This document shows, piece after piece, positions 3,010-45,748 of a stretch of 64,000 bases of DNA. The stretch comes from Takakia lepidozioides (taxonomy: Eukaryota; Plantae; Bryophyta). Location: contig CM060731.1 of NCBI GenBank assembly GCA_030704615.1, forward strand, positions 22,692,001-22,756,000, read 5' to 3'. Below the pieces are notes generated by a model. The model had not been told where the DNA came from. It was given only the letters and a program-made list of their open reading frames with translations, and did not search any database. Positions within the stretch are counted from its first letter, which is position 1, and every line of letters starts with the position of its first letter. Made by a program: the position numbers and the translations under genes.

Positions 3010-3422
3010 AAATGGAGAAACAAATATTATGGAAGAGTCATTGAGATGGACAAGTATTTAAATTAACGACTCGTCGTTGGAACCTGGTCTTAAGATACAT
3101 AGAAAACGCACTAGTATGTAAAGGTAAGTGCATGTGAATCCAAAACAAACGAGAAACTGTCTGTTTTGTAAGCCAAAATCCCCCACACGGATATTTGTAG
3201 ATGAACAGAATGTACAACAGTGCAGAATCTAGCATGCCAAAAAAAAAGATCGAGAGCGTCCACTGCCCACTCGAGGTTCAGTACGACAGAAAAAGAAAAC
3301 AAGAAGGATCCCCCAACGCAAACACAAAGGGAAAAAAGAATTTTTATATCTTAAAACGAATGACCGTAAATGACCTCATTATTTAGTCCACGAACAGAAA
3401 GTGGTTCGCAAGAAGGTAACCT

Positions 3423-6400
3423 TCAGGTATCTGGCTGAAGGTTAGCCTCTTCCAAATTCGCGTGCGCATTCACTGCTTCCACCGTTGTAATTCTCTTTGT
3501 GCTATTTCTTGTCGTATTTTTCGTGGCGGCATTGTCCACACGACATTGTTCACGTGGATCCATTGAGCAGGATCTGACGGGTTGTACTCCCAAACTTTTG
3601 ACCATCAGTCCCTGTACCTCTCCAAGTTTGAGGGCTAACCTCCTTTCTTCGGTCTCCACCACTCCACCTTCACTTTCTTAAAATTAGGATCCTCCCTTTC
3701 TCGGATGATATCTGAAATTGCCATTCCTATCCAGACCGGGCACGTCGTTGGGTCATGAGGGCGAACGAGCACAAAAAACCATTTCTCACTAGGTGCCATC
3801 CCTCCGATGGTTTGAGGACCAATTTGTTTTCGGCTAGAATCCCTCAAGAAACTGAATACGTTCCGAAATTTCCTGCATTGGCTTATCCAGTTCGGCGAGA
3901 ATATTTCCCCAGTATTGGTCGTATTGTTCCATTACACCTCGGTAATGATCGTCAAGCAACATTCCTTTGGTCCAAAAATCTCTGTAGTTCTTAATACAAT
4001 TTTTTATGAAGGACTGTTTTTCGGAGGAGTCGTCCCCGACAACCCATATCGGTCTTCTTGGAACGGAATCTAGGTCTCCTTCAGGGAGATTTGGATTCCC
4101 GTCAGGGTTGGACTTCCACATCTTAACACTGGAGTTTTAGGAAGCCACTCTGAATTAGTAGCTGACTTCTTGTACTTCATAACGGGCCAACCATCCGCAT
4201 CCTTAAAAACCCGAAAGATGTGCATATCTGAGATCCCGACCAAAGCCTCTTTTCCATCAAGAATACAACCCTTAACAAACTTCTTAAAGTCGGGAACCTC
4301 CTGAATAATTTGAGGAATGAATTGCATATCTTGGGAGATCATGAATGACCTCATCAAATCCGGAAGAATGTAGGTGTTGCGTTCCTTTAGCTTCTTTGAG
4401 ACATAGCTAAAGAATCCATCAATATCGTCATGGGTGTGCCCGCATGAGAAACCAAACTGGATCTCTTCAAAGACATCTTTGGTAGTGAGGAGGGATAGGA
4501 AAACAAGCATCCATCGTTTATCTTGCGGCCTGCAGGGTTTCGGAGCCACCAAACATCTCGATTTACCCCTCATGAGCGTTTCAAAAAAATCATTTTGAAT
4601 TGCAGTGTCAAAAATGTTCCTAGATTCCCGACATGTTGGCTTTTCTAGTTGACGCATGCACCGAGCCAACAACCCAATTGTGAAGTTTGAATTTTCCTTC
4701 CAGAACTCAAGAGAAAATTGAGCGTAAGCTCCATCACCGTGTCTGTGTGTAACCATTCCTGTCAATGAGATAGGCAACTGACCCAATCCCGAGACCATCT
4801 TGTTCGTCGTCTGTAGCCTCGGAATAGCTGTTTTCCTATTATCCGTCTTATCGTGAATAATACACAGGAACTCCTCCGGAATCATAACGGACTCATTCTT
4901 CCAGCTATGGTACAGCCTTCTGCATGACTCAAGTGCATATCAAGTGCCCGCTTATGTGCGACCTGTTCGGTACTCCTTTTAATAGACTTATTGATCAAGT
5001 CCTTCAACATCTCGCATTTTGTGCACTTAGCAAAGGTGCTTCCGATTTTCCGAACCTCCACGTTAGGAAATATTCGATTCCGGATGCGGCTTATAGCGGG
5101 CTGCGTGACTCCTTTCAAACCGAGAAGTCTATTTGTCTGCACCCCAACTCCCCAATAATGTCAACGTCCACTGGGCAGTGGAGGTTCTACAAAGTGGAAG
5201 AACAAGAAGGTATGATGGCATCAACACTATTTTGAAACAGGAAATGAGGACATGGAAAAAAAGTCACCTCATTGGACTCCTCTCGAATTCTCTTCCAGTT
5301 CATTTCGAGTGGCAAAACTCTCAAAGTATCTCGACATCCCTCTCCAATGCAACGTGTTTTGTGAGGCACATAAGGTCAGTATTGGCATTGATAATGGACA
5401 TAATGTTCCCCTCTGCCTGGAGTGTCCCTGGTCGAGGCTGCTTGACGCCACAATTTCCGTGCAAAGATATTAAACAGCCCTCTTTACTGAGCTTTTTGTA
5501 CTCCATGTACATTGACCTTTCAATTCCGTGTATTATCCACCATGCTTTCTCACAAACATCAACACCCTCTATCGTAACATACGACCTGCGCGATGCCCCT
5601 TCCATGATGTGAAGTCGTTTTGAAACATTCAATCCAAGTTCTCTCTTCTCATCGAATGACGAACCCCAAAATGCAGTACGAATTGTCAAGGTTTTTCTCC
5701 AATCAAAATACTAGCAGCACTGATTCAGCTTGCAGCAAGGTTTGCTACTCACCGACCTCACTTCCTCTAAAGTAAGATTTTTCTTGCATTTTTTTTAGTC
5801 CTCCAAATTGGATGATTTCTTCTTCCTATTAAAATGCCTGTACGCTGCTTTCTTCACGCCTATATGATGGTCGTCATGCTCCATGTCACTGCATGATCGT
5901 AGGAAATTTTTGAGATCAACGGAGAGTATCCGGCCATTTTGATCAAGAAGTCTTGTTTTTGTTAACGGCCATTTCACCAGAAACATCGTCCTCTCCGAGT
6001 TTGTCATTCAGAATGATCTCGTTAGGAATGCATGCCTGAATTCGGCCTTTGAACAGGGCGTTTCCGTCCTCCCCAACAAAAAGACATTGCAAGTTTCTCC
6101 AACAATTTCTCCCAAGACCTACAGCCGGATCCCCTTCAGTCTCACTGTTGGACGGAATTTCATTGCTTTCAGTGAATTGTCCTTGATAATCACTATCTTC
6201 TGTGATGGAATGAGATCCCGGATTTCCTTGAGATGCCGAATCCACAGTTTCATGCGGGTGAACACATGAGACGTCCCACACAACTGGAGTCCCAATTGCC
6301 TCCTTCAATGTGTCTGCATCCATGTGTCGATAAGGCAGAGGACAGGAGCCGAATGCATCATCACAAAAGGTCAGGATAATTGAAATGGTTTACGAACACG

Positions 6401-6514
6401 AGTGGTGTCCGTGGCAAGGTCCTTCCCCAGAGACATTCATGCACCTCCTGAGGCATCCACTGACGGAGATCCAGGAAGCGACAGAAACACCCTTTGGCCT
6501 ACTTGGAACCCCAT
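3423..6514 (-). pseudogene. Sola-like (DUF7869-type) DDD transposase, degenerate, with N-terminal Tnp1/Transposase_23-like SH3-type repeats
   Basis: Motifs CC..N.C, RTAFW, GVDVCEKAWWIIHGI, FAKCTKC, IIHDKTD and GHTHDDIDGFFS. The expected LQLDN segment appears deleted (PCRPQDKRWM). Intron at about 5137-5267. N-terminal VGQRVFL…PLPY…TLKEAIGTPVVW. Contains frameshifts and stops. Confidence 0.75.
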
Positions 6515-6797
6515 GAATTTAGTAACCTCCACTGGACAATGGAGGTTCAATAAAATCGGATTACGGGAAGGAAGATAAACTGAACGAAAGAACGTCGTGC
6601 CACCGAAAGGAAGAGTTGAAGTAGAACTTTTTCGACGGTTTTGAATGAAAACATCAATATGGTTTGAAAAGGTAAAGTCAATGTTTGGATTTATTCCGAG
6701 ACTAATGAAAGACAATTGGAATTGAAGTGGAGTATGAGGGCGGACTATAGAACAATGTGACTACATCTATCTGATCTGTCAGAAGAAGTCACAAATG

Positions 6798-6825
6798 CCA
6801 ACCTCCACTGGACAGTGGAGGTTGG
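6798..6825. repeat. Best copy of the dispersed palindrome CCAACCTCCACTG-GA-CAGTGGAGGTTGG
   Basis: Perfect 13-bp arms. Related 24-bp copies start at 3255, 5163, 6524, 9739, 9945, 11729, 27887, 28921, 29966, 31139 and 45365; half-sites at about 6936 and 30069. Confidence 0.92.
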
Positions 6826-7832
6826 ATGATATCTATTGATGAAATCAACCACATGGATGAACAATGGATATAAATGAAGAGGCCCTCTGTAGATGAGAAA
6901 ATGATTCTAGGGATGGATGAATAATAATGTGGGCGACTGCCCAGTGGAGGTTTGGGAGTAACTTTAGACAAACAAAAGCAAGTGTAGCTGGTGCACATGG
7001 AGAGTACACAAAAAAATGAGTATCATATTATCCTACGTGAGAAATGTGCAGTTGACACCCGAGACTAAGGAAACAGAGAGAGACGCAGAGGCTGCTTCAG
7101 AAGTACCCTATGGCCAAAGTGGTGCAGGACAGACGAAGAGGTGCACGTTGTCAAGAGAGGTGCAGGATGTCTAGAGAGGTGCGCGAGAGAAAAGAAGCAA
7201 GTGAGAGGTTCGCAGTGGGAAGTTGGTGTTGTGTGGAGTCAGACATTATATAGAGGTGACAAGTAACTTTCATCTTGAATCGCTCCAATGGCAATGTGGT
7301 ATGTTTTCTCTCCCGGATCGATTGTGGCCATCGTGGATTAAGGCGGAATCGAACGGCTTATGTATACCTGCGAAACCAAGGTTTCATTGAAAGTGTGCAC
7401 AATTTTTCATTTATTGACATCAGCCATTGTCACACTAATTATGCAACAACGATAACGGCCGCGATCAAATTGAATTCTATCATACTTGTATGTTAGTAGG
7501 GCTACATGTCTGGCATCATTATCGTGCAGCTTTGATAGCAGACTCTGGAATAAGCGTGAAGGATGCCGATTCTGACAAGTGGCCGGGAGAAATGAAGTCA
7601 TGCGGCTAATCGCCACTTGGATTGCACATTAACAATCGATCATTATAATCTGGGAGGAATCCGGAGGTGAACCATAAAGCACTTTGAGATTTTTCTGTTT
7701 ATATTTATCATGCTGTTACAGTGAATAAAACACTTGGGTAGGCCGGCGCATTGGACAGCGAGGGCGGTGCATAATAAGGGGTGTGCGTAATGCAGTGTCG
7801 TGCCTTGCTTGCTTGCACATGTTTAATGTAGG

Positions 7833-7925
7833 GATGGACCCCTCGTGTCGGGTATTCCTCGATAAATGGGCATTCCCTCTGGCTCTGGACCTTAAATCAA
7901 GGAATGCCCGACACGAGGGGCCATC
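7833..7925. repeat. About 30-bp inverted repeat with a 32-nt spacer in the divergent intergenic region
   Basis: gatggacccctcgtgtcgggtattcctcgat ... atcaaggaatgcccgacacgaggggccatc. Confidence 0.85.
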
Positions 7926-10021
7926 TACTATCCTTAAAGCCGTATGTCACATGGTACTTGCGGGTGTTGTCAGAGAATATTGACGTCTGGCGGCTAATTA
8001 CAGCCGAAAGTAATTGTGGACGGCTCATAAGATTATACTGTGTGACAAATCCATAGGTACACCATTGTGTCCTCTAGCAGATTGTGTTCAAAACGATTGC
8101 CTAGGCGTGCCACGTGGGTGGTCACATGTGCGTTTGGGGTGTGGGTTAAGGTTTTGCGGCTTCGAATCTATTTTAAGATTTTTGTAAGCATGCGGGTTGC
8201 AGAGTCTGACCAATGGCGTCATTACAGTCATTTCGTCCTTTTTTCATTCGTTTGTCCAGTTGTCTGTCCAAACGTGTGTGCATTCATCTGTCAATTTGGA
8301 ACAAATATTGAACTAATTTCATCTGTGTGGATGGACAGTATTAATGTTAGTTTGCGTGGATGGGGCAGAACATCCATTTGGGCCGCGCGACCGTTTGATT
8401 TCGGACGGAGGCGATGGTTCCCATCATCCCTGAAGGTCGCTTATAAGGGGTGCGCTCTTTGAGCCCGACCTTTGGGCTTCCCATTTTCTACACGTAAGCG
8501 CTGCGCGAGTGAGAGCTTGACAGTTGAGAGAGGAGAGCGTGAAAAAGAAGAGTTTTGAGCGAGTTTTGCAGCGATTGGACACTGGAGCATGGAGAGCAAG
8601 AGAGCAGATTAGGCAAGTGCAGAGAGAGGAGAGGGTGAAAGGTAACAGAGTGAAATAGGAAAAATTTGAAGACCGGGGAGGAGAGACAGGACAGTGGTGA
8701 GTGGAGAGAGACGAGTGCAGAGGCGAGAGCACAGGGCAATTACCGGCTTGCAGGCGGAGGTGCGGAAGAAAGTATCAAACGAAGGATTGTGGTTGCAGGG
8801 ATACCAAAATGGCCAACCCAAGTAGGTACAACATTGAAACTCCTTCTTTTCGTCTTCTGTTTCCTATTTTGTGTTGGCCTGTTCTCGATTCATGTGGTTC
8901 ATGTCAATTCGTTTGGCTCCTGCTTCATTCTATGCTACACTGCACTCTCTTCAGTGCACTCTCATCTCTGCTTCAGGGCAGAAGCATGCTACAGTGGCTC
9001 ACTTTTGTCTAGTCTAGTCTAATCTTACTCTCATTTTTTATCTTCAAAACACAACAGCTTTGTTGGAAACCAATTTTTGGGTGATCTCAAATTGAGTTGA
9101 CAGCAAAAATAAGTTACAACACCTAATTTAAAGTTCCTATGAAAAAAGATATAAATGAAAGTAGACTAGTTTAGACTGGACAAAAATTTCGCAAAGTGGT
9201 TGTTTGCTTCATTCCTGCTTCATTTTTTGTCAATTCATTTCACTCCTGCTCCATTCTATGCTTCAGTGCACTCCTGCTTCATTGCTTTATTGTTGTTTTT
9301 CAATTCACTGATGGTTTGTATGGTGGTTTTGTGTGCAATAGGGTTTTTGTACACTCGTTCTGGTAGATTAGGGTAATGGTTTAGGTTGGCGGGAGATTAC
9401 CATGCTGGTTGTATTGCTTGTTTTGTTCAATGTGGTGGTGTTTTGAGGACAGTGGTTTCGGAATAGTCCGGATGTTTATTTCTCAACCGTTTTCTTGATC
9501 CCCAAATCCAGCGTTAGTTTGTTCTTATCAAGATATTGTTGATGCATTTCTTCCCATTCCATTTCAATTCTCGTCCGCCCCGCCATATCTAATTTTGTCC
9601 AATTTGGCAATTATGAAAAACCACGATAGCCTAGTCTACTTGTATGCCACACTAGACATAGGCTAACAATAGGCTTCTTGCAGGCTAGAGTAGACTATTC
9701 GTAGACCCATGTCATGCACATGAGGAACAAAAAACTGGAACCTCCACTGCCCAGGGGAGGTTCGTGTGATGTCTGTTTGGGGAAGCTGAAAGACATTTTT
9801 TTTAAAGTAAGGACGAAATCGGATAATTCCGGGAAAAATGATTTAATCATTGTGAGAGGATGTGGGAACGAGTGATGGAATGATATGTGTAATATTGTAA
9901 GTGTAACACATATTTTCCAACGAGATTGGAATACGATAATTGGGAACCTCCACTAGATAGTGCAGGTTCGATATTTCTTTGGGTCAGCCAGTTACACACT
10001 TTGATTATTTTTTCTGTCAGT

Positions 10022-10676
10022 ATGAGAAAGAGAGGCGTGGGTGGGGAACCGGTGTCTGACGATGAGTACAAAACCGTTAGCTTAAAGTGGAGCAGGAGAC
10101 GGTGTTCGGTAGACGCGATGGAAGCGGACCATCCAGATCAAGAACATGATGTTTTGAAACCAGATGAAAAATCCCGTTGGAGGTTTACCGAGCCGAACAA
10201 AATGTCTGGGATTGACGAAAATGTGACTGTAGAATCCCCGCAAAACGCAGCCGAATCTCCTAACAATAGACCTCAAGACTACTCCCCGGATACCCTGGCG
10301 GAAATAAGAGATAGCGTTAGTGAACACACTGATGTCTACGGATCTCCTGCCTACTCCCAAAATTCTCCGACATACACCCCTCCAGACTATTCCCCGGACA
10401 CTTTGGCGGCGATACGAGAGACCGTTTTTGGATTTCCCGCATCTTCGGATTACTCGCCAGCATCTCTTGTATCCACCACAGGATCCTCCATGATATTACC
10501 CTCCACACTTTTCCCTGGACACTGCAACGAGAGAGGGAGTCCTGGAACCCCTGGACGTCTCTGGATCTCCAGGATACTCCCCTGCATCTCGTGATAGTGT
10601 CACCTGATCCCCGACGTACACCCCTCCAGACTATTCCCCTGATACACTCAGGGTGATCAGAAGGAGCATTTTGTAG
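10022..10676 (+). pseudogene. Ser/Pro/Tyr-rich repeat protein with YSP motifs resembling the Pol II CTD; one frameshift near 10490 and one in-frame TGA
   Basis: PQDYSPDTLAEIR…GSPAYSQNSPTYTPPDYSPDTLAAIR…SDYSPAS…(alternative frame) GSPGYSPAS…SPTYTPPDYSPDTLRVIR. Confidence 0.6.
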
Positions 10677-11179
10677 TGGTTGGGTATGTCGTAGACTCGT
10701 GTGAGTATAGTAGACGAAGTCTGCGCGTGGAGGCTCTTATATATGGAATGATGGATGCTAGTAAGAGAAATCTTGTTATTGGATTATCTAATGAATTTGT
10801 ATTTGGTTGTAACAGAAGACATCCTACACCACCAGATTGCGTCCCGGGATTGATTGGAGATATTTGTGGCGCATTCATATGCCGCAAGTGCTCAAATTTC
10901 AAAACTGACCATACCGCAATTTTTGAGATAAACCCAGAGGTGACAGATTGGGGCATCCGTGGAGTAATAATAGACGTAAAATACGCAGAAGCTATCGACA
11001 TTGAGCTTGAATCTGAAGAAGAAAACCCGATGTTGGTTTTGTTCCTGTATGAGGATGCGAGAACCCCCAAGACGTTTGGATTCAAAGTGCAGGTGGATCG
11101 TCTGAACAAGTCGTTGATGAGTGAATGCATTGGACTGGGTTTTAGATTTTCCGACGAGGCTCAATATTTACCGACGTAG
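10676..11179 (+). CDS. Uncharacterised 167-codon open frame inside the outer element
   Basis: Stop-free frame with globular composition and a CxxxxCxxC cluster. No family recognised. Confidence 0.35.
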   Translation: MVGYVVDSCEYSRRSLRVEALIYGMMDASKRNLVIGLSNEFVFGCNRRHPTPPDCVPGLIGDICGAFICRKCSNFKTDHTAIFEINPEVTDWGIRGVIIDVKYAEAIDIELESEEENPMLVLFLYEDARTPKTFGFKVQVDRLNKSLMSECIGLGFRFSDEAQYLPT

Positions 11180-11223
11180 GTTTGTCGAGGGCCTGGAGTA
11201 TTTTTCTGGATTTTGTGCACGCA

Positions 11224-12636
11224 ATGGGGAACGACAATCGTAAGAAGCGAGCACTGGAGGAAGCATCGAAGCTGAAGAAGGGAAAACGCAAGTCGTCGAC
11301 TGCCATGAATGATGACAATGAGGCCGGGACATCCGGAGGAAAGAAGAAACAGAAGGAGGATCCGGATCCAGATGGAGGAGAGGCTCACGAAGGAATATAA
11401 CGATGTATTTCCGTTTGGATTCGAGAGTACCTTCCTTGTGAAGGTTTCCATGATGGAACTAGCTCCAAGGAGCATGGTTTACAGGCTGCTAAATATCAAG
11501 CATAAGGACGAAGTGAAAGCGCGACTCTTCCAGCTTCATTTGTTCGACTCCAAACATCCGGTATATCTTGCGCCAATCAACCCTTCAAATCCGGAGAAGA
11601 TTGTTTCATCGCGACCGAAGCAATGGAAGGAAATGAACGTATCCAGGTTCTTCGTAATTGGAGAACAACACACCATCGTGGCCGCAAAGGTAATGGACTT
11701 CATTGCCACCCAGACCTCTCTTTTAAGGAACCTCCACTGGGAAGTGGAGGTTGGTGCTCCCTCGAAGTTGGATATGTCGCTATCTCTTTCACCTCTCTCA
11801 TCCATTTTACCCTAAGTGTCACAGGAACTTTTCGAGGATCTTGCCGACAACGAACTGAAGGAATACTACTGGGAGTGGCCTGCGAAGATTGTATGGTCTT
11901 CCGATGAACAGAGGCTCCTGAAGCTATCAAAGCTCCTCAATGATCCCAATAAGGCGCAAAAGTTTGATACAACAATGCCGGAGAAAGTTGCACATGCGCG
12001 AATGTTATTCAACCTGAGGGGGAAGCCAAAGAAATACAACGATCACACCACCAAATTCGAGACGAAACAATGGAAGGTATGCATTTATGGAATGAAAATA
12101 TATTATTCACATTCATTTAATGCTAAAGTATACTTCTGTGGTCGGAGTGACATTAAAATTTTCCGTGGATGAATGTGCAGGAGTTCATGTTTGTCTGTCA
12201 TTTGATATTTGAAATGGGTAGCATTAAGGAGGCAATGGTTCTGGTACTTTGCAACGACGACATTTGGAAGATCTGGGAAGATGTGTTCAAACGCTGGGAG
12301 CAGGGAAAGCTTCTCGACCCGCTTGGGGTACAATACAAGGGTGAACAGCAACAACTCACGAAATCTGTTATCGCAAAGCTGCAAGGATTGAACAGATGGC
12401 AGCTGATAAAAGTTGCACAAAAAATCCTGGACTTGAAATTGAGCATTCGAGATTACAAATAACAAGACAAATCCATTCAAGGCATGAACAAGTACATAGA
12501 CGACATGAAAATGCACCGGTTTATTGTCGACAATGTTATGGAAGTTTTGGGGTGGCCTCGGAGGAGCAAATAGTGCACGGAACCATACACTAAGGACGAG
12601 TAACATGAAATGAAGAAAAAATATCACTTCAATAAG
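11224..12636 (+). pseudogene. 5' half of a ParB/Srx-fold protein gene (NLS, ParB-like domain, helical region), interrupted by the Gypsy element
   Basis: KKRALEEASKLKKGKRK; VKVSMMELAP…YRLLN…PVYLAP…FFVIGEQHTIVAAK…WPAKIV…LSKLLN. GT-AG introns at 11690-11824 and 12077-12180 rejoin the frame. Confidence 0.65.
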
Positions 12637-13639
12637 TGTCACGCGGCTTTTGCTCACCCATCCCTTCGCTATCCGAGGCGGAAACTCCAAGATAGAAGAG
12701 TTGGAAATCTCTAAGCACTCAGCCCGCTCAGAACAAATCAGTCATGACCTACAGCTAGTGTATCATGGGGGTGTTTCCTATTTGTTTTCCTTCCCGCATT
12801 CATGTTAGCTAGTTACCTTACTGTTGGTAATTAAGTATCAGTTTGCTTCAGCAATCTATCGGATCCCATCAACTCATCCATTCATTCCACAACTTCACTC
12901 AGATCTCTCTACACAGTGTGAGTATGAAGTATGTATCAGATTAATATCTATCGAGTATCAGGCTGAAGCCATGGAGTCTCTAATCTGCTCTACATTACAA
13001 CTCTACTGCTTGCATTCATTAAGCATCAACAGATCGTCCTCCTCCTACTCTGTGCTCTCCCTCCTTCCGCTCAGAGATGCGCTCTCTCCTCCTTTCCTCC
13101 CGTGAAGTCCGAAGTTCCCCCAAGAAGTGATCCCTCGCCTCCTTCTCCCCGAATTCCCCCAAGAAGTGATCCCCCGCCTCCCGTCCTCGCTCCTGGCTTT
13201 ATCTTCCTACCCGTCGTTCTAAACGTTTTCCTCACTAACCGTCATCCGTGTACTAACATGTTCCATTCGCAGATGTTGTTCCCCACAGTCGTTCCCTATC
13301 CTACTATCCATTCCCTATGGTCGTGACAGCTGTGTCAAGCTGTGACTGGCTGTGCGACTGTGTTGGGCTGTGTCGACTGTGTCGAGCTGTGACTAGCTGT
13401 GACGGCCGTGTCTGGCTGTGTCGGCTGTGTCGGACTGTGACGGGCTGTGTTGGCTGTGATGGGCTGTGACGGGTTGTGTCGGACTGTGACGAGCTGTGTT
13501 GGCTGTGACGGGCTGTGTGACCCCCCTCTAAGTGCGCTGCTGTCACCCCTAAGGCTCATGTTGGTCTTAGTCTGTGCAAAATTAAGGGTACCCCCACAGA
13601 TCCCGTATAAGTGTCTAAGTCCCAGACAGTCCTCTAACA
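12637..13639 (-). repeat. 3' LTR (1003 bp) with a GCTGTG tandem array
   Basis: Nearly identical to 24887-25889 apart from a few substitutions and repeat-unit indels. Confidence 0.96.
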
Positions 13640-13657
13640 TTACCCCTTTCCCCTCTC
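13640..13657 (-). other. Polypurine tract
   Basis: Minus strand reads GAGAGGGGAAAGGGGTAA immediately before the 3' LTR. A similar tract is at 59141. Confidence 0.9.
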
Positions 13658-13678
13658 AAAAAGTCGTGTCCTCACGGT

Positions 13679-25889: not shown

Positions 25890-25894
25890 ATAAG

Positions 25895-33850: not shown

Positions 33851-33949
33851 GCATGATATCTTAATGGGAATGCGAAGGGAGTGTTACCACCTTAAACTAT
33901 CATGCATGGTCTATAACTGGAGTGCACAAATCGCGCATATCTAATCTTC

Positions 33950-36900
33950 ATCATCCTCATCTATGTCTGGGTCACTACAATGTATCACTGTCTTCATCAC
34001 AGACTTCATCTTTTCCAAGGGTTGGCTGAACATCATCACCACGTATACGGGGTGCTCGGAGGTACAAGGAGGCCACCTGCTCTGGAGTCCGGTACCATCC
34101 GCCGGCTGCATGTTGGGCCATCAGTAACCACAGTCTCCTCTAGTCTTTGTGGGGCTAACAATCCTTCCACTTCCACATCAATTGATATGTCGTCAGACCA
34201 CTCTACGTGCTCGGGGGCTCTTCTCCAGGACGACTTTCCACCCCGGCTCCTTCACACAATCAGAAAAAACACTTGATCAACCTGGCCAGAAAACACAAAA
34301 GGTTGCTCAGAAGGTGGAAGCATACGGTTAAAATTGACAAGTGTGAAGCCAGCATCATCCTGCTTCATTGACATAGGTTGACGACGACCCACGCGACTCG
34401 CCCGTACCCACGAACACAAAAACACTATAGGCTGTGTTTGGCCATAGTCAATTTGCAAAATCTCCCTTATAAGACCCACATATCTTGTAGGTTCCTCCAT
34501 GTCATTGCCTGAATTGTTGGTAATGGGCTGGTGCTGGAAAACAGATGAGACTCCACAATCAAAAGACACCATACTTGTTGTGTTCATGCCGGGGGATGTA
34601 ACCCTGTAATGGTTACCATACGCTGTCATACTCTTGAATGACAGGGCAGTAAATGATGGAGGCCTTAAAAGATCCAGTAATTCCTCACGTGTTGTAGGAT
34701 CAAGCCCATCTGATTGAATTGAGAGATGATCCCGTACACCTTGAGGGAGCCAAACAGCAAATGGAGGACAAGGATGCAAATCAGGAGGGTACTGAATTGC
34801 CGTGGGATTGCTCATGCCTTCCAGCCCTTGCTCCTCACGAAACAAGCGTCGTCTGGCTTCTATCCGTGTGGACTCTGCTTCATATATCCTGTCACAATCC
34901 GAGGGTCAGCCAGGAGATTGACAGAGGTGGCGTGGGAGATTTGAAAAGACGCCATATGCCAACTAATGATAAATGACTAAAACTTGGAAATCTGAATGTC
35001 AATGAAGTAGATTTCTTACCCCAACATGACTGATAGACGAGGATGGTTCTGAATGATGTACTCATGTACAATATCACACAGGTCATTCAATTTTCGGGCT
35101 TTAGAACTTCCTTCCACAACTTCACGTTCCACAGATTTGCCTCATCTGCATCCCACACCCTTCGTACACTTCCATCAAATCCTGCCATATACTCTGCAAA
35201 AACCCAATGCTTCTTCAAATTGGTATCCTTCTGCCATGCTCCCTCGGGCCTTGCCATGTTTCTTACGTAGCCCTTCATATCTTTCATTGCCCGCTCCATG
35301 GGGTACATCCAACGAGATGCTACGGGCCCGCATAAGTACAACTCATCCACTAGGTGAACAACCAGATGTGTCATCACATCAAAAAATGATGGTGGGAAAC
35401 TCCTTCTCTATAAGACACAGAGTGAGAACTGCTTCAGTCTCAATTCCTCATACTCTACAGGATTCACCACTTTTGCACACAACTTCTTAAATACACGACA
35501 TACTCGCAAAATGGCCCTTCGAGGACCACTTGGCATGAGCCCACGGATAGCAAGCGGTATAATTTGCTGCATGAGCACATGATAGTCATGTGATTTCATG
35601 CCTGACAACTTCTTCTTCACCACATGCTTTTTGAAAGCTGATGCGTAGCTTGTTGGCACTTTCAAGTTCTGCACAATCTCCAGAAAGACTTGTAACTCAG
35701 CCTCAGTGAGGACATAAGGGGCAGGAGGCATAATTAACGTATCTGCTCTGTCAGGATCACGTTGTAGCCACAATTCCGGGCGCATCCCAAGTAGCTCCAA
35801 ATCACGGCGAACTTTCAATGTGTCTTTCTCACCAAAGATAGTTTTAATAATATTTTCAGCCAAGTTCTTCTCGCAATGCATTGCGTCAAACGTGTGGCGG
35901 ATGAGGAGACCCTACAAAATGAACACATAAGCAATTGAGCATTTACTCATCACAATTTAAACAGAAAACGCAAAAATGTACACAGCCAATTTAAAGGCCA
36001 TGAAGGAATTACCTCCCAATAAGGTAAGACATATAAAATTGACAATCGCTTAACTCCATGAGTTTTTGCTGGGTCTGTCCTGCTATCTGGCGTCCCTCCG
36101 TTTCCACCCATGCAGTGCGAGCTGTTGCAAGGTCCTTGATTTGTGTTCCAGTCTGCGTTTTGGAGGAGTTCCATGCTCAGTAGCGCCATTGAACATTCTT
36201 GACCTTCTATATAGATGATTGCGGGCCCAAAATCTTCGGTGGCCTAGGAAAACAATTTTTCCACATGTGTGTAACTGCTGTGAAGTCACCCCAGGTCCAC
36301 AAGCTGGACAACCAGCATAACCTTTCGTCACTTGACCTGAGAGCAAGCCATATGCAGGGTAGTCATGGATTGACCACATCAACACTGCCCTCAGTGTGAA
36401 TTCGCGTTGACCACGAGGACGGGAAACATCATGAGCTGCAATCCCTCTCCATAGTTCCAATAGCTCTTCCACTAGGGGCATCAGGTAAACATCTACGTTG
36501 TCCGAGGTAACAGACTCCTTACCAGGAATCAGTAGCGCTAACATGACAAAGAACTTTTTGGTCATTAACCACGGAGGCAGATTGTAATTGACCAAGAGAA
36601 CGGGCCATGTGCTCCAACTTGTGGATTGAGCTCCGTAGGGATTTACACCGTCTAAGGCCAATCCAAATCGCAGAGATCGTGGCTCTGCAGCAAAATCCGC
36701 AAATGTGGTGTCAATGTGTCTCCATGCTTTGCTATCAGCTGGATGTCGAACCAACCCATCCTGGCTCTTATGTCTGTCGTGCCATGTCATGAGGTTAGCG
36801 ATCGATTTACATCGGTACATACGTTTCAACCTTGGAATGACAGGGAAGTGTCGCAATACTTTCTTGGGCACACTTCCACGACCTGGAATGTAACGGGAAC

Positions 36901-38081
36901 TGCGGCACACTGGGCAAATGTCTACATTCTCATACTCCCCACGGAAGAGTACACAACCACGCTCACAGGCATGAATCATCGTGTACTGCAATCTCATCTT
37001 GGCAATCATGGTTTTTGCTTCATAGTGAGTTTTCGGCAATGAATTCTCTTTAGGCAAAAAACTCTTACGCAACAATCCCAGAAGCTCATCCACAAATGCA
37101 TTGGTGCACTTGTGGGTAGTGCATGCGTTCAGCAACGTCAAAGTTGCTTGCAGCCGGCTGATGGAGCACCCTTCAAAAAGTGGACATTGCGACGCTCGGA
37201 AGAGTTTATCATACTCGGGATCAACGTGCAGGTGAGCATTCTCATCAAATTCATTGTCTCCGGAATCGTCGAGATCATCGTCATGATCGGCAAATGTGTG
37301 ATCGGTTCCACCATGAATGGGGTCCTCTCTGTTTGCATCTGCAAAGAGAAACGCTTCCTGCAATGCACGCTGCATTTCTACCTCCAATCCACCACTCTCA
37401 TCTGCGTTCTCTGTGACATTGGGCTCCCGCTGTGCCGCAGGGCCTTCGTCTTCATCATCTGAATATTCACATCCCTGCATCCCAATAGTCATCTTGTGAG
37501 TGGACCAACAACGATGTGACACTTGTTCATATTATGACATAGGAGGCACGGTGACGTTGCAGTGATGCAGTCATATTTACGTATGTATCTTATGAATATA
37601 CACCCAATCAAAACACGACATTTGTAACCATTGAAGTCATAGTTGCAGTCACTTACTTAGTCATATATGACTACATGACTACACATGACCAATGAAAACA
37701 CGACATGTGCATTAATTAAAGTGATAACGGAAGTGGCGTAGTCATACTCACGTCTGTATCTTATGACTTCTTGACTACAATCACCCAACGAAATGTCGAC
37801 ATGTGGAGAAGAGGATCGTTGCATTCAAAATTCAAACTAAAGTGCTGAAGGGAAAGTGACGATCTTACCGGAAGAGAACAGCGTTGGAGAAGAGGATCCC
37901 TCCCGTGTATCATGTAATGATTCCTCACTGTTTCCAACAAGAGTACTTTTCCTCCATGACACTCATCGCAGTTGCATAGCATTTTTGTATGCCCATTCCT
38001 TGTGGCATAAGCTTCTTTCATTCGCCATAGACGGTCATCTATTCTACGCCTACGCATCCGTTCGCCACCTGCACTGTACAT
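33950..38081 (-). pseudogene. CACTA TnpD/Tnp2 transposase (Transposase_21, DUF4218, DUF4216)
   Basis: IHACERGCVLF…CPVC…HPADSKAW…LDGVNP…STWPV…YNLPPW…HDYPAY; MHCEKN; MKSHDYH; WMYPMER. Contains frameshifts. Confidence 0.93.
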
Positions 38082-38641
38082 GCTTTGAACGTCACCCCTT
38101 CCCTCTTTGCATGCTACGCACAGTGCATTGTCTCTAGTTTTGCACCAGCTGCCAATGTGCTATTTCTATATCTATAGTATACTATAAGTATCGTTTCTGA
38201 GTGTCCATGGTGAAGCGGAAGGTCTTCGAAGTGACAGTCCTTCTCACTGAGTACGAGAAGTTCCGAGAGCGCCGGATTGCTGCCATAAAGGAGGTGGAAG
38301 CAACGTTCAAGCAGTCGATAGATGGGTGAGTTTAGTTCCTGACTTTGGATACCCACCCACTAAACTTGCGATTTGCCTTATCCTCTAACCTTCCTACAGC
38401 GATCATAAGCTTCATAGCACAAATGGGGGCGAGTAGCTGCGACTTGTACAAACAGAGAGGCAAACAACATGCAGTGAGTGACGATTAGGTTTGAGGAGGG
38501 TGTGTCATTAGGCGGGAGATGTCCGCCGTCATTCGTGGGCAGGCATTACGTCCTGGTAGGGTGCGGCTGTGGTTCAGCGTAGGCTTAAGAGTATTAGGGT
38601 ATGTATGCTTACATTTGTTTGTTGATTGTTTGAGGGAGGTC

Positions 38642-41600
38642 ATGGAGGTGTTTGTGCAGGCTTGCGGGAGCGAATCGCCCTCGCAAGCCACGCGCTCCGA
38701 AGGAAAAAGTAGGGATCAAGGTCCTGCAAGGCAAAGTGCCAGACTGAAGACGATGAAGACTACGATTCTGCATGAGGGCTCTTCTGAGGACGATGAGGAC
38801 GATCCACTCCTCCCACGCCAGTGCGAGGCGAGTGCGTCGTCGGCGGATGCCACGGCAAGCCGAGGAGAACATGCCCATGCTCATGTCGCAGGACAAAAAA
38901 CCCATCATCTACACTACGAACACCTTCTCCGTCTGTGAGTTATAGTTCTTCACAATGACCATGATTCTAATTATGTATGTTTTTGGTAAAATCACGAAGA
39001 GATAGGGTATGTCTGTCAAGACAGGGAAGTTGGACAATGCAGGGGTCAGCCAAGGCACAATCACAAATGATTTCCACTAGACAAGTTGAAGTGCCAAAGG
39101 CATGATGTCAGGCCAATGTAGACTTCAGGTGTGTTCAAATTCTTTGCCCCATGAAACCAACGTCCTGGTACTAAGCTACAATGGCTACTTATAGAGATAC
39201 TTGGGTTACTTATGCACCCAGAATATCAGTAAAACTTGGAGGGATACTTCTCATGGACCCATCAGGTTTGTCCATTTGAATTCTTGCTATGGATTTCAGG
39301 AACACCCCATACCTAAGAGGGCTAAAAAATGTACTGGGAGGACATCATTGGGCCAATCAAATTTGGGAGATTTACTGCCCAAGATCATACTGAGTTTTGG
39401 GTAATCTTGTCTTTACAAATGATATGTGCTTCCAGTTTGTTTTGCCTGATTCAAGGATTTGTTGCTTGCTGCCTATATGTATGTGTAATCACCCACATTG
39501 TACTGGGGGAATTTCTTTTCAGGCAAGCACAAGCGCACTGGATCCACGATCCCTGCTGCTAGCAATGGAGATGGCGCCCACAAGAACGCAGGAGGTGGCC
39601 CTAACTCTCCCAACGTTGTGGGTTCTGTGCCACCAGTACCCCCACCTTATTATGGTATGCCTCAGTACCCACAGTCTGGCACTCAGTATGGTCAGGGTCA
39701 ATATGGTGCTCCTCCATATGGCCAGTATGGCCAGTATCCTCCTCCACCATATTTGCCACCCCCTAATAGCTATGGGGGTGGCAGGCCACCGGAATATCCT
39801 CCTGCTTATGGACAGTATGGCCAGTATGGTCCTCGGCCTTCTGGCCAACAACCATGGCCACCAGTCCCTACTTGGCAGGATCCTGCTTTGAATTCTCCTG
39901 AGCGCACGGAGGTCTCTGAAGGAGGGGAGGGTGCCGTTTCAAAGAATGATAGAACCAATGCTTTAAGGAGGGCTAATAGCTCAGCCAAAATTGAAGCTGC
40001 CAAGGTCAAGGAAGAGAGAATAGCTGCAGGTCTTCCTCCCACGGTGATTTTGACGAACCTCAAAGGAGCCCCGTATGGTCAGACCCGGAATGTATGGCAC
40101 GCTGCCCTTAAAGGACAGGCTTATCGCAAGCTAGATTGTTCCCTTGCCATCAACAACCAACCTGATGAAGTTGTATACGAAATCAGAGATCACCTGGCTA
40201 AGCTATTTTCATATACGCCGCACGAGTTAAAAGACTTCCACCTAAAACAAACAATTGGCAGAATAATGAAGAGCCAGCGTTATGAAGCACACACTGCGTG
40301 GTTGGGTGGTAAGGGGAAACCCATTACTGTATCTGACGAGGTATGGAACAAGCTTGTAAGTTACTGGCAGACAGAGGTGTTCCACAAAGTGTCGGGCAAC
40401 ATGAAGAAGGCAAATGGTGCAATTCTGAATCCTACCAAGACTGGCCGTGGTGGGAAGGCAATGGTGGAAGCACGCTTGGTAAGTGGCATCATCACGACTC
40501 TGTATTTTGTTCCTCATTGAATTGCTATGTGTATATAGTCAGCCCTCACATTGCTTACTGACTTGTGGCATGGGTTTGTTTGTGGCATGGATTAATTTGT
40601 AGGAAACACTATCAGGGTGCCCTCCTACATTATATGAAATTCAAGAGGGTTCAGTGTCACGGTTGTCAGCTGTGAGTGACAGGCGGGTAAGTGTGTTTTC
40701 CACGCTAGAGTGGTTGCTGCATCATAGGTTGCTAGGGTTTTTTTCACGGCTTTTGGCCTGGGTTTTCTTTCAATGGTTGTTCATGCTAGGTTTTTTTGGT
40801 TTGATTCATACATACTGGGCAAGTTTTCATTGGCAGGAGGGAAGTCTCGCATATTCTACAGTAGTTGGCAGGATGGATGGCTTGGACAAACTGGTGGAAT
40901 CACAAGGACGTGACATGGCAGAATTAAAATTACAGATGCAGAGTATGATTGAGTACCAGAAAGCCATTGTGACCAGATTGGGGATTAATCTACCAGGCGC
41001 AGGACCAGTGACATCTACGATGGATACGTCTGCTGTGACAGTATCAAAATGTTTGGAATCCCAATTTCAGACGGTAACTGGTGCTCACTCTAAGCCCTTA
41101 TGTCTTCCTGTCACTGATGATCTTTTGAATTTGACCGAGCAGCAGCAGGATACAGGGAAGGCCAGCTGTGAGGTACACGTGGAAATTCAGCCCTTGCCAC
41201 GTACAAAGGCAGTAGCAGTCCAGGGGGCAATGGTGACAGAGCCGCCGGGCACACCGGATTCTGGTATGCAGGTATGTGGGAGTTTAGATGGGGAGGAAGA
41301 TGCAGACGGGGACAAAACAAACAAGCAGGTTGCTTTAATTTCTCTTGCTCACATGTTGAAGCCAAATGTCAGTTTACTTCCTGGACCAACGAGGAAGCAT
41401 TTACTAATTCTGGACTTAAATGGTCTGTTATGTGAATCTTTTCATTCTGCTAATGGGCCTGCATCCCTTCCCAAAGGTTTTGTGGGGAAGATGTGTGGCA
41501 AGAAGATGGTAGTTTTGAGACCACGCTGTTATGACTTTTTGCAAAAGTGTTTTGAACACTTTGAGGTGGCGGTGTGGTCTTGTTGCCAAGCTCGCAACTT

Positions 41601-42739
41601 CTTCCCAATGGTGGACTATATTTTTGCAGCCCACACTAACCTGGTTTTCCAGTGGGATGCCCTTCACTGTGACGAGGATCCAGTCCTCCCATGCCGTAAG
41701 GGGTCTGATTCAAAGCCATTATATTTCAAGAACTTGTCTACAGTGTGGGCAGACTGGCCAGAATGGACTTATGAGGACACTGTTCTTGTTGACGACACAC
41801 CAAGAAAGGCGGCAAACAATCCTCCCTTCAGTGGGATTTTTCAGAGCCATGGAAGGTGCAACCAGATTCACCAACTGATGAGTATCTAACAGAGGTGTTG
41901 TGGCCTTTCTTGTGGAAGGCATCGAAAGCTGCCAGTATTCCCAAGTTTTTGGAGTCTCAGCCTGTTTTCGGACAACAACCATACAACACTGCTACTGTGA
42001 AGGTACAAACATTCTGACAGTGCTCCAGAGGCTACATTTTTGTGGGTTCATTCATTGCATTGCTTTCCTGGATGCTTCTCCTCGGTTGCTTGATTAATGC
42101 TAGGTTTTCTTTGCAGCTTTTCATGTTGGCTTTTTTTGTTTGATTCATACTTGGATTTTGTTTCTATTCACTATTCCTGTTTGCTCATTGCTTTCCTGGT
42201 TGATCTCTGGTCTGTGACACAGGAACTTGTGACAAACAAAGGTGATATTGTCGACAAGCCGGTACAGACGAGGGGCAAGAGTGTCGACCCGGCGAGTAGC
42301 CCCCCAAAAGAGGTCTCACCACCACTGGAGACTGCAAATGGAGTAAGTCCAGGCCGTTGTCTTGTCTGTTATATTTTTTCCAACCTTGGGGCTCTCTTTA
42401 ACTCGCAAATGTTGAGTGTCCTAGTCGTGTGTATGTCATGGGTTTTCACATCGTGTTCTTTTTTGTGTGGAGTTGGGATCACAGTTCAGGGTGGGTGACG
42501 AGGTTCGGCTGTTGGATGTGAACTCCAAACGCAAGAAATGTGGAGTAGGGCTGATTGTTGCTCTTCAAGGTGTTGTGGTGGGTTACGGGTACCCTGCTGT
42601 GCCCCTTGATTATGCCTGTGTGTACATCAAAGAGGCATGTGTCAGTAACACCCCTCTACCATATGTGAATGGTGTTAGGAAACAGACCGAGTTGGGGCAG
42701 GTGGTTGGCCAGACAACACTTTGGAGTCTAAAGTTATGA
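38642..42739 (+). pseudogene. Multi-exon CACTA accessory (TnpA-like) gene: QYG/Pro-rich region, Transposase_24-like region, FCP1/NIF domain, Transposase_23-like C-terminus
   Basis: VSDEVWNKLVSYW…TGRGG; LLILDLNGLLC…LRPRCYDFL…FEVAVWS…YFKNL…TVLVDDTPRKAANNP; VGDEVRLL…PLPY…LGQVVGQTTLW. Confidence 0.78.
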
Positions 42740-43319
42740 AACTTATGGAGCTGCGGAAGGGATAGTCAGTATTGCACTGTTTAACAGAGTTCTTGATTCT
42801 AATAGCACTAGAACATACTAGCTACAACAATTCAGCCCATGTGTGGGTTTGCTTGTTTTTGGCTGGGCCTTTTGAGGCATGGATTTTTTGACCTTGTGGC
42901 TTTTGAGGTGTCCATTGGGATATTGGTCTCATTTGGATTTTTGTAATGTGATTTATAGGGCTTGTATTGCCCTGTAGTTGACTATTTTCATTCTCCTTGT
43001 GGTTGATAGTATGCAGGAGGGATCCATTCTGTTTTCATGTTGGAATTTCACCATGTAATGAAGATTTTAAATCATTTAATTCACTTTCATTTTAAATAAT
43101 AATATTAAAAATAATACCATTAAAAAAAAATCCAAGGCTGCAATCTCCCTGTTCTTTTAAATATTAAATGAAAACTAAAAATTAAAATATGAACATTAAA
43201 AATATAAACTATTTCGGAAAACAATCTTGATGACACGTGGCATCACTCTTGCTCAAACCAGAACACGCGGCAGTATAAAACACGACATTCTTTATCCATA
43301 TTTTCACCACGTGTAAAGA

Positions 43320-43920
43320 TCCGTAGTCATATATGCTAGTCATATATTTTGTCTGTGTGCCACATGTCACATCTCAAGTGCAACAGGTGTCCCGCTAATA
43401 TCTCTCCATGTAGACATCCCTGTAGTCATATGAGCGAGTCATGTAGTCACCACGTGTGAAATCTGCCATAGCACACGTGTCTCGCTAGCGCCTCTCCATG
43501 TAGGCATCACTGTGCAGACATGTAGTCATATGATCATGGCAAGAAGTCGTGACATGTCAAATTCGCAGTGGCGCACGTGTCCATCCGTCGCCTCTCCATG
43601 TAGGCATCACTTTGCAGACATATAGTCATATGATCCCTTGACGAATGCATGACGTGTCGCTTGCACAGTGGCGCACGTGTCCCGCTGAAGCCTCTCCATG
43701 TAGGCAGCGCTCAACAGACAATGTAGTCATATATTAGTCATATAGTTGTGACTGCAACCCTCTCTGCAGCAGGACTCCAGGTGCCACGCAAGCAGTCATG
43801 GATATGACTTGCTAAACGCAGTCCTAAAGACTAGTCGCTATGACAGGGCTTTTTTCACTACAGAGTGATGTAGTCATGAACGCATATAAGACTGAAAAAA
43901 TAGTCATATGTGAAGTCATA
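43320..43920. repeat. CACTA right subterminal repeats, including about four longer cacgtgtc…ctctccatgtag…gtagtcat units
   Basis: Directly visible tandem units. Confidence 0.85.
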
Positions 43921-44016
43921 AAAATGCTCATCTGTTGTAGTGCTAATGTCAGTGTGTGATTAACTTGTTCAGAATAAAGTTTTGTCTATCATCTTTTACA
44001 TGCAACAGCAGGGAAG

Positions 44017-45038
44017 ATGAAACGGATGTTGTTAATTTTGAGTGTCAATGGACTCCTCTGCTACCGGCCACCCCCAACCGGCGGTGAACTGTTTAAGGAG
44101 AAATATATTTCGTTTCAGAAATGTGACACTTCAAGTTCCTGACAGACCGTTTGTGGTGCCTCGGCCTGGAGTCTTGGAGTTTCTGGACCTTGCATTGAAG
44201 CATTTTCACGTGGTCATTTGGTCATGCGCTGATAGAGGTGTTCTTTGTAGGATGTTGGAAACCTCCATCCCCACGAAAATAACGAAGAAGTTTTGCTTCA
44301 TATGGTCAACTGAAGATTGCAAGGATATTACCGGTTATATCAGGCCCGAGATAAAATATCTCGTGAAAGATATTCGCAGTGTTATTGCCAAGTCCCCTGG
44401 TAGACCGTTTGCTGCGCATGGGCAAATACTTCTTGTAGATGATGAGCCATCAAATGACCTGCGAAACCCACAAAATACTGGATTCTTCCCTTTCTCGTTC
44501 AAGCCATCACCAAACGGCTTGCGTGACCGGGACGATATGACAAAGGCAGTATGACCATACATATGGGCCTGGTATGGAAGATATCTTGATCCTCGTGTTT
44601 GGATCCCACAACAAAATGAACCTGATTACCTTGGTAGGCAAGTGGATCCCCCTATTCTGTTGTTTGTTCAGAATTTGATTTTCGAATTCTTTTGCATTTG
44701 CATTTGCACTCCTACCTCAACAAATCCTCATTATGCAAAACTTCCACTTTGAGCCTAACATTTGTCATTTCAACCGCGTGTCCCCAGTTACATTCAAGGA
44801 ACGAATTCTAAAAGAGGAAGAAGAGCTACGTGATTGGGAAGAATGGCGGGCGTGCCGGGAGGCTTCAAGGGCATCAAGTAGAGTTGGCAGCAATATTTCA
44901 GATGACAATGTCAGCCGGTTTCATCTTCTTGAAAGTATCTCCGTTTCCTCTGGTGCGGAGACCATTGCAAGTGGTTGTGGTAACCGGAGGCGTCTTCGGA
45001 CACACGCCTTGACTGTGAGCCGTTTGGGAGGAGGCTAA
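44017..45038 (+). pseudogene. FCP1/NIF-like domain #3 of the outer element (motif I D>S) with a downstream exon
   Basis: MKRMLLILSVNGLLC (frameshift) …PRPGVLEFLDLALKHFHVVIWS…EDC…LVKDI…ILLVDDEP…NPQN. Confidence 0.8.
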
Positions 45039-45748
45039 GTATTATTAATGAGTTAATATAAGCCGTAATGGCTTCAAAATCTATGGCTTGTATGACATTA
45101 AATCCATGAACGGATGTACGGTTGACGTTCATTTCCCTGTTGGTCCATCGCCTTGAATGATACAATCTCAAATAAAATATGAATGTTTCATATCATCAAT
45201 CAGGTCCCGGTAGACTCATTTTTCCATGTTATCCTATTCATCATTTGCCATCATTGTTTCATATTTGGTTCTGCCATTGTTCCATGTTTGTTTGTGTATG
45301 TCATTTTGGATATCAGAGCTCTCATCATTATTTGATTCATTGCATCCTCCCATTCCTTTTAATGAACGTCAACTTGGCAGTGGATGTTCTTCTAAGACCA
45401 CAATACATACTTGTATTTCTGCGTAGAATGTGTGGAGGATTATATAATTCGTTGTTATATAGTGCACAAATAGCCAAATAATTATAGATATATCTCTTTA
45501 TTTGTATTATAGATTATATTTATTCATATATCTTATATTATTTCTGGACCAAACAAAAGTCCATAATTAATTAAAATAGTGTTAAGACCTCATATATAGC
45601 TATCATTGGAATAATTTTATGAGACCTAATTATGCTAGCAAGAGCGATGACAACCTTAGGCCTAGTACATAAGCTGCACTGACACACTTTTATCGGCGCA
45701 ATGTCCATCTTTCAACATCACATCCAACTATTGAATTGGGGTTGGCAC

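Follow-up and report, generated by a model that had tools for sequence, protein, structure and literature searches.

The question raised by this locus is whether a transposase gene and a group of genes transcribed away from it belong to one large DNA transposon and, if so, by what mark such an element can be recognized. The locus lies in a 64,000-nt stretch of Takakia lepidozioides DNA (assembly GCA_030704615.1, CM060731.1, positions 22,692,001 to 22,756,000, forward strand), referred to below as the window; coordinates are those of the window unless another locus is named. A preliminary description had proposed a giant Sola-like transposon carrying ParB-, methylase-, and phosphatase-like genes along with palindromic sites of its own. 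The most solid new result of the present analysis is an array of short palindromes that is found throughout the transposon family and has its own sequence in each lineage. The outer unit of the window is probably one decayed, twice-interrupted copy of a multicopy family of cut-and-paste DNA transposons with a DUF7869-type transposase, the palindrome array being the hallmark of this family.

The extent of the outer unit becomes clear once two nested elements, neither of which belongs to it, are removed:

12638-25889, minus strand: Ty3/Gypsy long terminal repeat (LTR) retrotransposon, LTRs of ~1.0 kb
31308-43942, minus strand: CACTA element with a terminal 18-mer common to both ends

The Gypsy element has, besides its LTRs, the reverse transcriptase-RNase H-integrase domain order and is flanked by the 5-bp target site duplication (TSD) ATAAG at 12633-12637 and 25890-25894. 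The CACTA element has CACTA-type ends, a match to Transposase_21 (E value of 5e-72), the 3-bp TSD CTA at 31305-31307 and 43943-43945, and subterminal repeats at 31368-31610 (left) and 43421-43893 (right). Both insertions had been recognized in the preliminary description by the same TSDs, and the 16 to 17 kb expected there to remain after excision agrees with the ~16.2 kb obtained here (3255-12637, 25895-31307, and 43946-45388).

Within this remainder, the 24-bp palindrome AACCTCCACTGNNCAGTGGAGGTT is the feature common to both halves. The 64-kb window contains 10 matches to it with no more than 3 mismatches, compared to the 0.00 expected, as well as two weaker, degenerate copies at 3256 and 45365. 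All 12 palindromes lie inside the 16.2-kb unit and none in the other 47.8 kb (Gypsy, CACTA, and flanks); the chance of the 10 scored sites all falling inside the unit is ~1e-6. The tie between the two halves that had been proposed from this palindrome therefore holds. The sites, listed without strand, are as follows:

3256-3279: leftmost palindrome, degenerate; proposed left limit of the unit
5163-5186: palindrome between two transposase exons, in the same place in loci L001/L002, L009, L013, and L020 (see below)
6524-6547 and 6800-6823: two palindromes in the divergent upstream region
9739-9762 and 9945-9968: two palindromes at the start of the cargo cluster
11729-11752: palindrome in the intron after the first ParB-like exon
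27887, 28921, 29966, and 31139 (the last ending at 31162): four palindromes in non-coding DNA between the NIF-coding blocks
45365-45388: rightmost palindrome, degenerate; proposed right limit of the unit

These locations are non-coding: the palindromes fall between transposase exons, upstream of the divergent genes, in the ParB-like intron, and between the NIF blocks, and the window sites have no conserved flanks. At positions 9958 and 9963, other genomic copies keep the consensus half-site that has decayed in the window copy, so the palindromes can be regarded as conserved features of the family. An exact search of metagenome contigs for the palindrome returned 0 matches.

The left part of the unit is occupied by the transposase gene:

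3638-6389, minus strand: DUF7869-family transposase gene, exon pieces 5946-6389, 5324-5710, 4885-5160, 4073-4939, 3837-4136, and 3638-3931

The open reading frame (ORF) 4070-4885 on the minus strand matches the Pfam family DUF7869 (PF25273) with an E value of 3.1e-25 and 89.3 bits against a cut-off of 26. There are 61 homologues at ~50% identity, nearly all of them with PF25273, and further exons were mapped one by one with tblastn to loci L009, L013, and L020. The alignment of the family (A4) contains three conserved acidic blocks, IIHDKMD, LQLDN, and GHTHEDID, consistent with a transposase of the RNase-H-like (DDD/E) type; the assignment of the catalytic Asp residues within these blocks is inferred. 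In the window protein, there is a gap at the near-invariant LQLDN block, which would hold the second catalytic Asp, and so this copy is dead. The DDD transposase of the preliminary description is thus present on the minus strand as a DUF7869 gene, but not as an intact enzyme. A profile search of PDB sequences with alignment A4 gave no match, and the term DUF7869 was not found in the literature searched.

Transposase relatives from four other assemblies (L001/L002, L009, L013, and L020) show how far the palindrome array is a property of the family. Each of them has an array of its own, listed here by transposase core-exon identity to the window gene:

L013: 42% identity, palindrome GTRTCGGCYNNNRGCCGAYAC, 17 sites, ~0.01 expected
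L020: 44% identity, palindrome GTRTCGGCYNNNRGCCGAYAC, same as in L013, 18 sites, ~0.01 expected
L002: 47% identity, palindrome CATCTGGAGATCTCCAGATG, 12 sites, 0.00 expected
L001: 49% identity, palindrome CATCTGGAGATCTCCAGATG, same as in L002, 3 sites, 0.00 expected
L009: 51% identity, palindrome GTGGGGAGGCCTCCCCAC, 24 sites, ~0.01 expected

In every lineage, one palindrome occupies the counterpart of the 5163 site of the window, between the corresponding two transposase exons. Given that each lineage has its own array and shares this inter-exon site, the array characterizes the transposon family as a whole, and the palindrome sequence varies along with the transposase.

Several features of these loci deserve separate mention. 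L013 (7329-13815) and L020 (426-8341) are 80 to 85% identical over ~6.5 kb, with a 1.5-kb stretch present in L020 only. The L009 sequence (1-17593) is a contig of 64% G+C in which the transposase is found next to fragmented bacterial genes of the mraZ, rsmH, ftsI, murE, and mraY types; it may come from a bacterium that harbours a eukaryote-like transposon or from a degenerate symbiont, or it may be chimeric. On the minus strand of the same contig (3096-4259), a 387-aa ORF consists of 138-bp tandem units, each of which contains one palindrome of this locus and a second dyad, CCTCCGTCA....TCACGGAGG.

The other part of the unit is a cluster of accessory genes, termed here the cargo, which is encoded on the plus strand and diverges from the transposase gene:

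9893-10672, plus strand: ORF with the motif SP(T/N)Y.P.DYSPDTL, DNA repeats (family D20) at 10256-10320, 10364-10428, and 10608-10672
10643-11176, plus strand: orphan 178-aa open frame, Pfam-negative
11146-11397, plus strand: Lys/Arg-rich open frame read from the sequence, upstream of the ParB-like exon and overlapping its start
11309-12459, plus strand: ParB/Srx-like gene part, exon 1 from 11309 to ~11700 ending in FFVIGEQHTIVAAKV, further exons in 11816-12169 and 12157-12459
25895-26806, plus strand: exons of a methylase-like region, degenerate N6/N4 amino-methyltransferase type
26818-27576, plus strand: linker ORF of low complexity, acidic, then Ser/Pro/Lys-rich
28074-28895, plus strand: NIF-like domain 1, LVLDVGYL at the motif position
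28990-29721, plus strand: NIF-like domain 2, LIFYLNGVL at the motif position
43978-45035, plus strand: NIF-like domain 3, LILSVNGLL in 43978-44139, main ORF 44042-44551, C-terminal tail 44679-45035

The divergent accessory cluster envisaged in the preliminary description is therefore present, with the SP..DYSPDT motif, ParB-like and methylase-like exons, and three NIF-like domains, all on the plus strand. Protein searches with the cargo of the window used each exon on its own. The first ORF has no Pfam match; its motif occurs in three 13-residue copies, encoded by DNA units whose starts are 108 and 244 nt apart, and does not form tandem heptads. The likeness to the C-terminal domain (CTD) of RNA polymerase II suggested for these repeats is a loose one; the three SP(T/N)Y.P.DYSPDT copies are not YSPTSPS-like heptads in tandem. 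The homologue search with the orphan ORF found nothing, and the Lys/Arg-rich frame looks like a putative nuclear-localization stretch.

The first ParB-like exon (11309 to ~11700) belongs to a tiny family, with 16 true relatives among 1.84 billion representative proteins. The top-ranked match of the exon, P0062, is an Ig-repeat protein and was rejected as spurious. The exon order agrees with that in L003 and L004; the relatives P0065, P0066, and P0069 come from contigs shorter than 2 kb, which give no genomic context, and no relatives were detected in metagenome contigs with the window exon as the query. The family signature in alignment A1, FF(I/V).GGQH(T/S)I..A.K, resembles the strand-GxxR-helix element of the ParB, Srx, and DndB proteins, but the position of the Arg residue is occupied by Thr, Ser, Ile, or Met. 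No ParB helix-turn-helix (HTH) domain was identified in the gene. AlphaFold2 models of the domain were poor, with the confidence measure pLDDT at 62.1 for the window exon (17 sequences) and 45.4 for residues 350 to 553 of P0078. In fold searches with these low-pLDDT models, Foldseek found nothing in PDB at E < 1, VIA-align (wide) reached a best Z of 2.5, and Atlas shape comparison gave TM values of no more than 0.32. In a protein language model, the nearest named neighbours are DUF3723 clusters at 0.95 (182 shared features) and ParB_N clusters at 0.91. The ParB label, a tentative lead, derives from the motifs and these neighbours.

The methylase label has a similar, if more indirect, origin: it comes from motifs and from the language-model neighbours of a relative, the middle ORF of the L004 contig. 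In the window exon 26387-26806, only KP..FE and motif-I-like stretches are recognizable, with a weak alignment to the L004 ORF. For the latter, N6_N4_Mtase (PF01555) of bacterial or phage origin accounts for 26 of the 30 nearest named Atlas clusters, and the motif-I region of the ORF is recognizable but degenerate. The positions of motif IV, (D/S)PP(Y/F), and motif I, FxGxG, are both degenerate in the methylase-like proteins. A homologue search with the L004 middle ORF returned only the query itself.

The NIF-like domains are the best supported at the level of Pfam. Domain 3 matches NIF (PF03031) with an E value of 7.4e-9 and 35.9 bits against a cut-off of 21.8; domain 1 scores below the threshold (E value of 0.015), and domain 2 is similar to the NIF domains of L004 and of the nested CACTA element. 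The solved structure closest to these domains is UBLCP1. The catalytic DxDx(T/V) motif is replaced in all of them, by DVGY, YLNG, and SVNG in the unit and by DLNG in the CACTA, L004, and L002 proteins. Catalysis by these domains appears unlikely, and their earlier designation as pseudo-phosphatases is borne out at the level of the motif, which is missing from all three domains of the unit. The CACTA copy is encoded within 39498-41889 on the plus strand, where a TNP1-like ORF (Transposase_24, E value of 7e-4) precedes a 411-aa ORF that encodes a NIF domain (E value of 8e-13). Its motif is LILDLNGLL, with DLNG in place of DxDxT, which makes it the fourth pseudo-phosphatase of the window and one carried by a different transposon superfamily.

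In other assemblies, parts of this cargo are found both with and without the transposase. In L013, the gene divergent from the DUF7869 transposase matches the ParB-like profile with its exons in the right order (exon 1, E value of 2.4e-4; exon 2, LYIIGGQHT, probability 79.5%, E value of 1.5e-5) and has palindromes within its introns. The L002 locus has a NIF gene (Pfam E value of 1.3e-10, motif DLNG) 4.3 kb downstream of the transposase. The short L004 contig encodes, in this order, the ParB-like protein, the methylase-like ORF, and a NIF domain (E value of 2.6e-13, DLNG), so that the cargo module has been preserved as a whole. On the examined locus sequence of L001, L002, L009, and L020, no ParB-like gene was detected, either with a strict motif search or with the A1 profile. 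The association of the transposase with accessory genes that the preliminary description implied is thus seen in L013 (ParB-like) and L002 (NIF). The homology between L013 and L020 stops just upstream of the L013 ParB-like gene, and so the cargo may vary between copies in that genome.

Do the two halves form a single mobile element? Sequence comparison supports treating the transposase and the accessory genes as components of a single mobile unit that is repeated, since the same palindrome is found in both halves, the intervening 6 kb is repeated in the genome, and L013 repeats the divergent arrangement. The repetition is seen in contigs from one sample of this organism (four runs): in 4500-10499, which starts in the transposase gene, takes in the upstream region, and reaches the first cargo ORF, all 30 bins are covered by hundreds of such contigs at 80 to 100% identity (1731 contigs in run X1). 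An apparent contig joint from 5139 to 6799 was rejected as a real deletion; it most likely reflects a contig ending in a palindrome that matches better the copy at 6800.

A number of results weigh against this reading. At the proposed ends, 3255 and 45388, which are defined only by the outermost and most degenerate palindromes, neither terminal inverted repeats (TIRs) nor a TSD could be detected above chance, and the 7-mer matches of the flanks are also at the chance level. None of the contigs from other copies is long enough to span both transposase and cargo, and no RNA run containing the element was found. Most of the related transposase loci show no cargo on the examined sequence, so the link between the two is not obligatory. 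As for the nature of the cargo, none of the 17 rows of alignment A1 has a Pfam match at E values up to 10, the PDB sequence profile search with A1 gave no match, and PF01555 is matched neither by the window exons nor by the L004 middle ORF. Finally, in L006 (9971-14239) and L007, which represent the same locus of a plant-like genome, the DNA directly outside the end of a CACTA element contains a ParB-like exon together with a remnant of NIF (LIFDLNRVL). The preliminary claim of one unit is thus sustained by the shared palindrome, the repeated 6 kb, and the pairing in L013, but not by common termini, and the shared ends, TIRs, and TSD that were to define it did not emerge.

Two of these points can be put next to observations on the flanking DNA. 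The leftmost palindrome starts 6 bp past an A-run (3241-3249) that closes a fragment resembling a long interspersed nuclear element (LINE), and this adjoining fragment may hide where the outer unit really begins on the left. The LINE-like fragment itself (2482-3249, plus strand) includes a 175-aa ORF with a C..C....H...C knuckle and the A-run, and no TSD was found for it. In L006, CACTACAAGG at 14239 forms the CACTA end, and the CACTA transposase is encoded on the other strand; the same arrangement is seen in the window at 29.7 to 31.3 kb. Preferential insertion or an exchange of genes between the two kinds of transposons may lie behind the position of cargo beside CACTA ends.

The absence of common termini would also fit a small element encoding nothing but the transposase and a separate cargo gene, belonging to the host or to another transposon, that had become neighbours by chance. 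The ~3.4 kb around the transposase that is all L001 and L002 have in common is consistent with such a small element, as is the lack of DUF7869 on the examined sequence of the L004 and L006 modules. Yet the same palindrome occurs on both sides of the presumed junction and nowhere else in the 64 kb, both halves recur in the genome, as does the intervening DNA, and the divergent arrangement is found again in L013, so that a chance association is very improbable. If the unit is accepted, the palindromes could still belong to the cargo, as parS-like or operator-like sites of the ParB-like protein in a self-recognition or anti-silencing module analogous to VANC; this is, in essence, what the preliminary description had put forward. 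ParB proteins classically bind short palindromes. Furthermore, the window and L013 have palindromes together with the ParB-like gene, including sites in its introns, and the ParB_N clusters are among the nearest named neighbours of the protein. However, the four loci (L001, L002, L009, and L020) in which arrays surround the transposase but no ParB-like gene was detected on the examined sequence argue for an association of the palindromes with the transposase and not with the cargo, and one palindrome is fixed inside the transposase gene in all lineages. The ParB-like domain, for its part, has GGQH(T/S) without the Arg of GxxR and no identified HTH, and its ParB fold was not confirmed by the models and fold searches. 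An operator role for the cargo is therefore unlikely, and the earlier claim is not retained.

A further explanation takes the palindromes themselves to be tiny mobile or copied units, each consisting of two abutted transposon ends of 9 to 11 bp, 0 to 3 bp apart, that were locally seeded by the transposase and survived only in non-coding DNA. In several families of bacterial insertion sequences, inverted repeats that abut each other serve as active substrates. Seeding of this kind would fit the lack of conserved flanks, the confinement of the sites to non-coding stretches, their variable number (3 to 24 per locus), and arms whose sequence follows the transposase lineage while the spacer stays at 0 to 3 bp. 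But individual palindromes are not flanked by duplications, and at least one site is fixed between two exons across lineages, which points to retention rather than random seeding; this origin of the array is distinctly doubtful.

With the decayed, twice-interrupted transposon as the preferred reading, the palindromes are predicted to be bound by the transposase of the element, acting as a dimer, and the array would mark the element and help its recognition and assembly. That the transposase, and not the cargo, is the binding partner is a proposition we hold about evenly balanced. The cargo, transcribed away from the transposase, combines, in this order, the SP..DYSPDT, orphan, basic, ParB/Srx-like, and degenerate methyltransferase-like parts with the three NIF parts. 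Given that all its recognizable catalytic motifs are lost, the cargo product most likely acts by binding rather than catalysis, possibly as a nuclear, non-catalytic binding protein that aids transcription or transposition of the element; it may act on DNA, on silencing, or on the polymerase tail. In a bolder version, the cargo protein would have been assembled from a ParB-methyltransferase fusion of the phage type and from modules like CTD phosphatases, every one of them catalytically disabled, and kept across distant plant lineages; it would read the palindromes of the element and, at the element, hold or mimic the phosphorylated CTD of RNA polymerase II. The element would then possess a device for transcription or anti-silencing directed at itself, perhaps with a relationship to DUF3723 of fungal Starships; this scenario is speculative and rather improbable.

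How does this element compare with known systems? Typical Sola members encode only a transposase. These superfamilies of eukaryotic DNA transposons are reportedly the subject of Bao et al. 2009 and Yuan and Wessler 2011. Like them, the element described here is of the cut-and-paste kind, with an RNase-H-like transposase and three conserved acidic positions, and L001 and L002 encode the transposase alone around their shared core; in contrast, its only Pfam name is DUF7869, and neither TSD nor TIR is defined for the outer unit. The literature searched contained no description of this architecture. VANDAL elements of the Mutator superfamily encode VANC proteins, which bind motifs in the elements' own non-coding DNA and thereby counter silencing. 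The two systems share the presence of an accessory protein besides the transposase and of short motifs repeated in non-coding DNA of the transposon; they differ in transposase superfamily and in the accessory protein, which is unrelated, and the motifs here follow the transposase, not the accessory gene. CACTA (En-Spm) elements with TNPA are likewise two-gene DNA transposons, in which many short repeated motifs are acted on by both the transposase and the second protein, and the nested CACTA element also carries a DLNG-type NIF domain. However, CACTA motifs are non-palindromic and clustered near the ends, whereas here perfect dyads are spread over the entire element, including introns. We know of no Sola elements with palindrome arrays or with ParB-like or NIF cargo.

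For the cargo, the closest parallel in domain order, a ParB-like followed by a PF01555-like domain, is provided by the fusions of ParB with N6_N4 methyltransferases in phages and plasmids. The cargo gene differs from them in being eukaryotic, intron-containing, and transposon-borne, in having NIF domains added, and in showing no Pfam-level similarity, with degenerate DPPY and FxGxG-type motifs. The eukaryotic ParB-HTH-Dam fusions of Iyer et al. include another methylase group and come from another lineage (PMC4738411). DUF3723 is a conserved auxiliary gene, of unknown function, of the giant Starship transposons of fungi (PMC9156397). Like the ParB-like gene, whose closest named language-model neighbour it is, DUF3723 is an accessory gene that travels with a transposon; Starships, however, use a tyrosine recombinase and occur in fungi. 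With no HMMER match to PF12520 (DUF3723) in any member of the ParB-like family, this link is a lead only. The NIF domains, in turn, resemble the FCP1/SCP CTD phosphatases, scoring above the Pfam threshold in domain 3, the CACTA copy, and the L004 and L002 genes, but differ from them in that DxDx(T/V) is replaced in every copy.

The remaining observations concern the nested elements and the rest of the window. The right subterminal region of the CACTA element includes three 100-bp tandem units (43421-43720) that are 68 to 76% alike. In the Gypsy element, a 991-aa ORF without a Pfam match lies downstream of pol (14144-17119, minus strand), and an array of repeats with a 10-bp period (GCTGTG type) is found in the LTRs (13356-13527 and 25566-25786) and in the internal region (17907-18149); a diverged second Gypsy copy occupies 58.0 to 64.0 kb of the window. 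A 329-bp perfect foldback at 328-656, directly after an LTR end, consists of 133-nt arms that are 99% complementary and a 63-nt loop, similarly to miniature inverted-repeat transposable elements. Outside the outer unit, the minus-strand ORF at 48028-49821 encodes a 597-aa protein with zf-C17orf113 (E value of 9e-11) and DUF4371 (E value of 2e-6) domains, a combination typical of hAT-derived proteins.

DNA transposons are known to control their own recognition and to escape silencing mainly through accessory proteins such as TNPA, VANC, and the Myb-like protein of Harbinger elements, of which few kinds are known. The palindrome array described here, a lineage-specific "bar code" that covaries with the transposase, provides a natural system for studying the coevolution of transposases and their sites. 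In the source genome, the 24-bp palindrome marks an abundant family and can aid its annotation. The recurrent cargo appears to bring together three disabled enzyme folds, of which one is reminiscent of a ParB-methylase fusion of phages and another of the enzymes working on the tail of RNA polymerase II. Should the weak lead to DUF3723 prove correct, it would connect plant transposons with the fungal Starships; if the cargo does bind the element or the polymerase tail, it would represent a new kind of transposon self-regulation.

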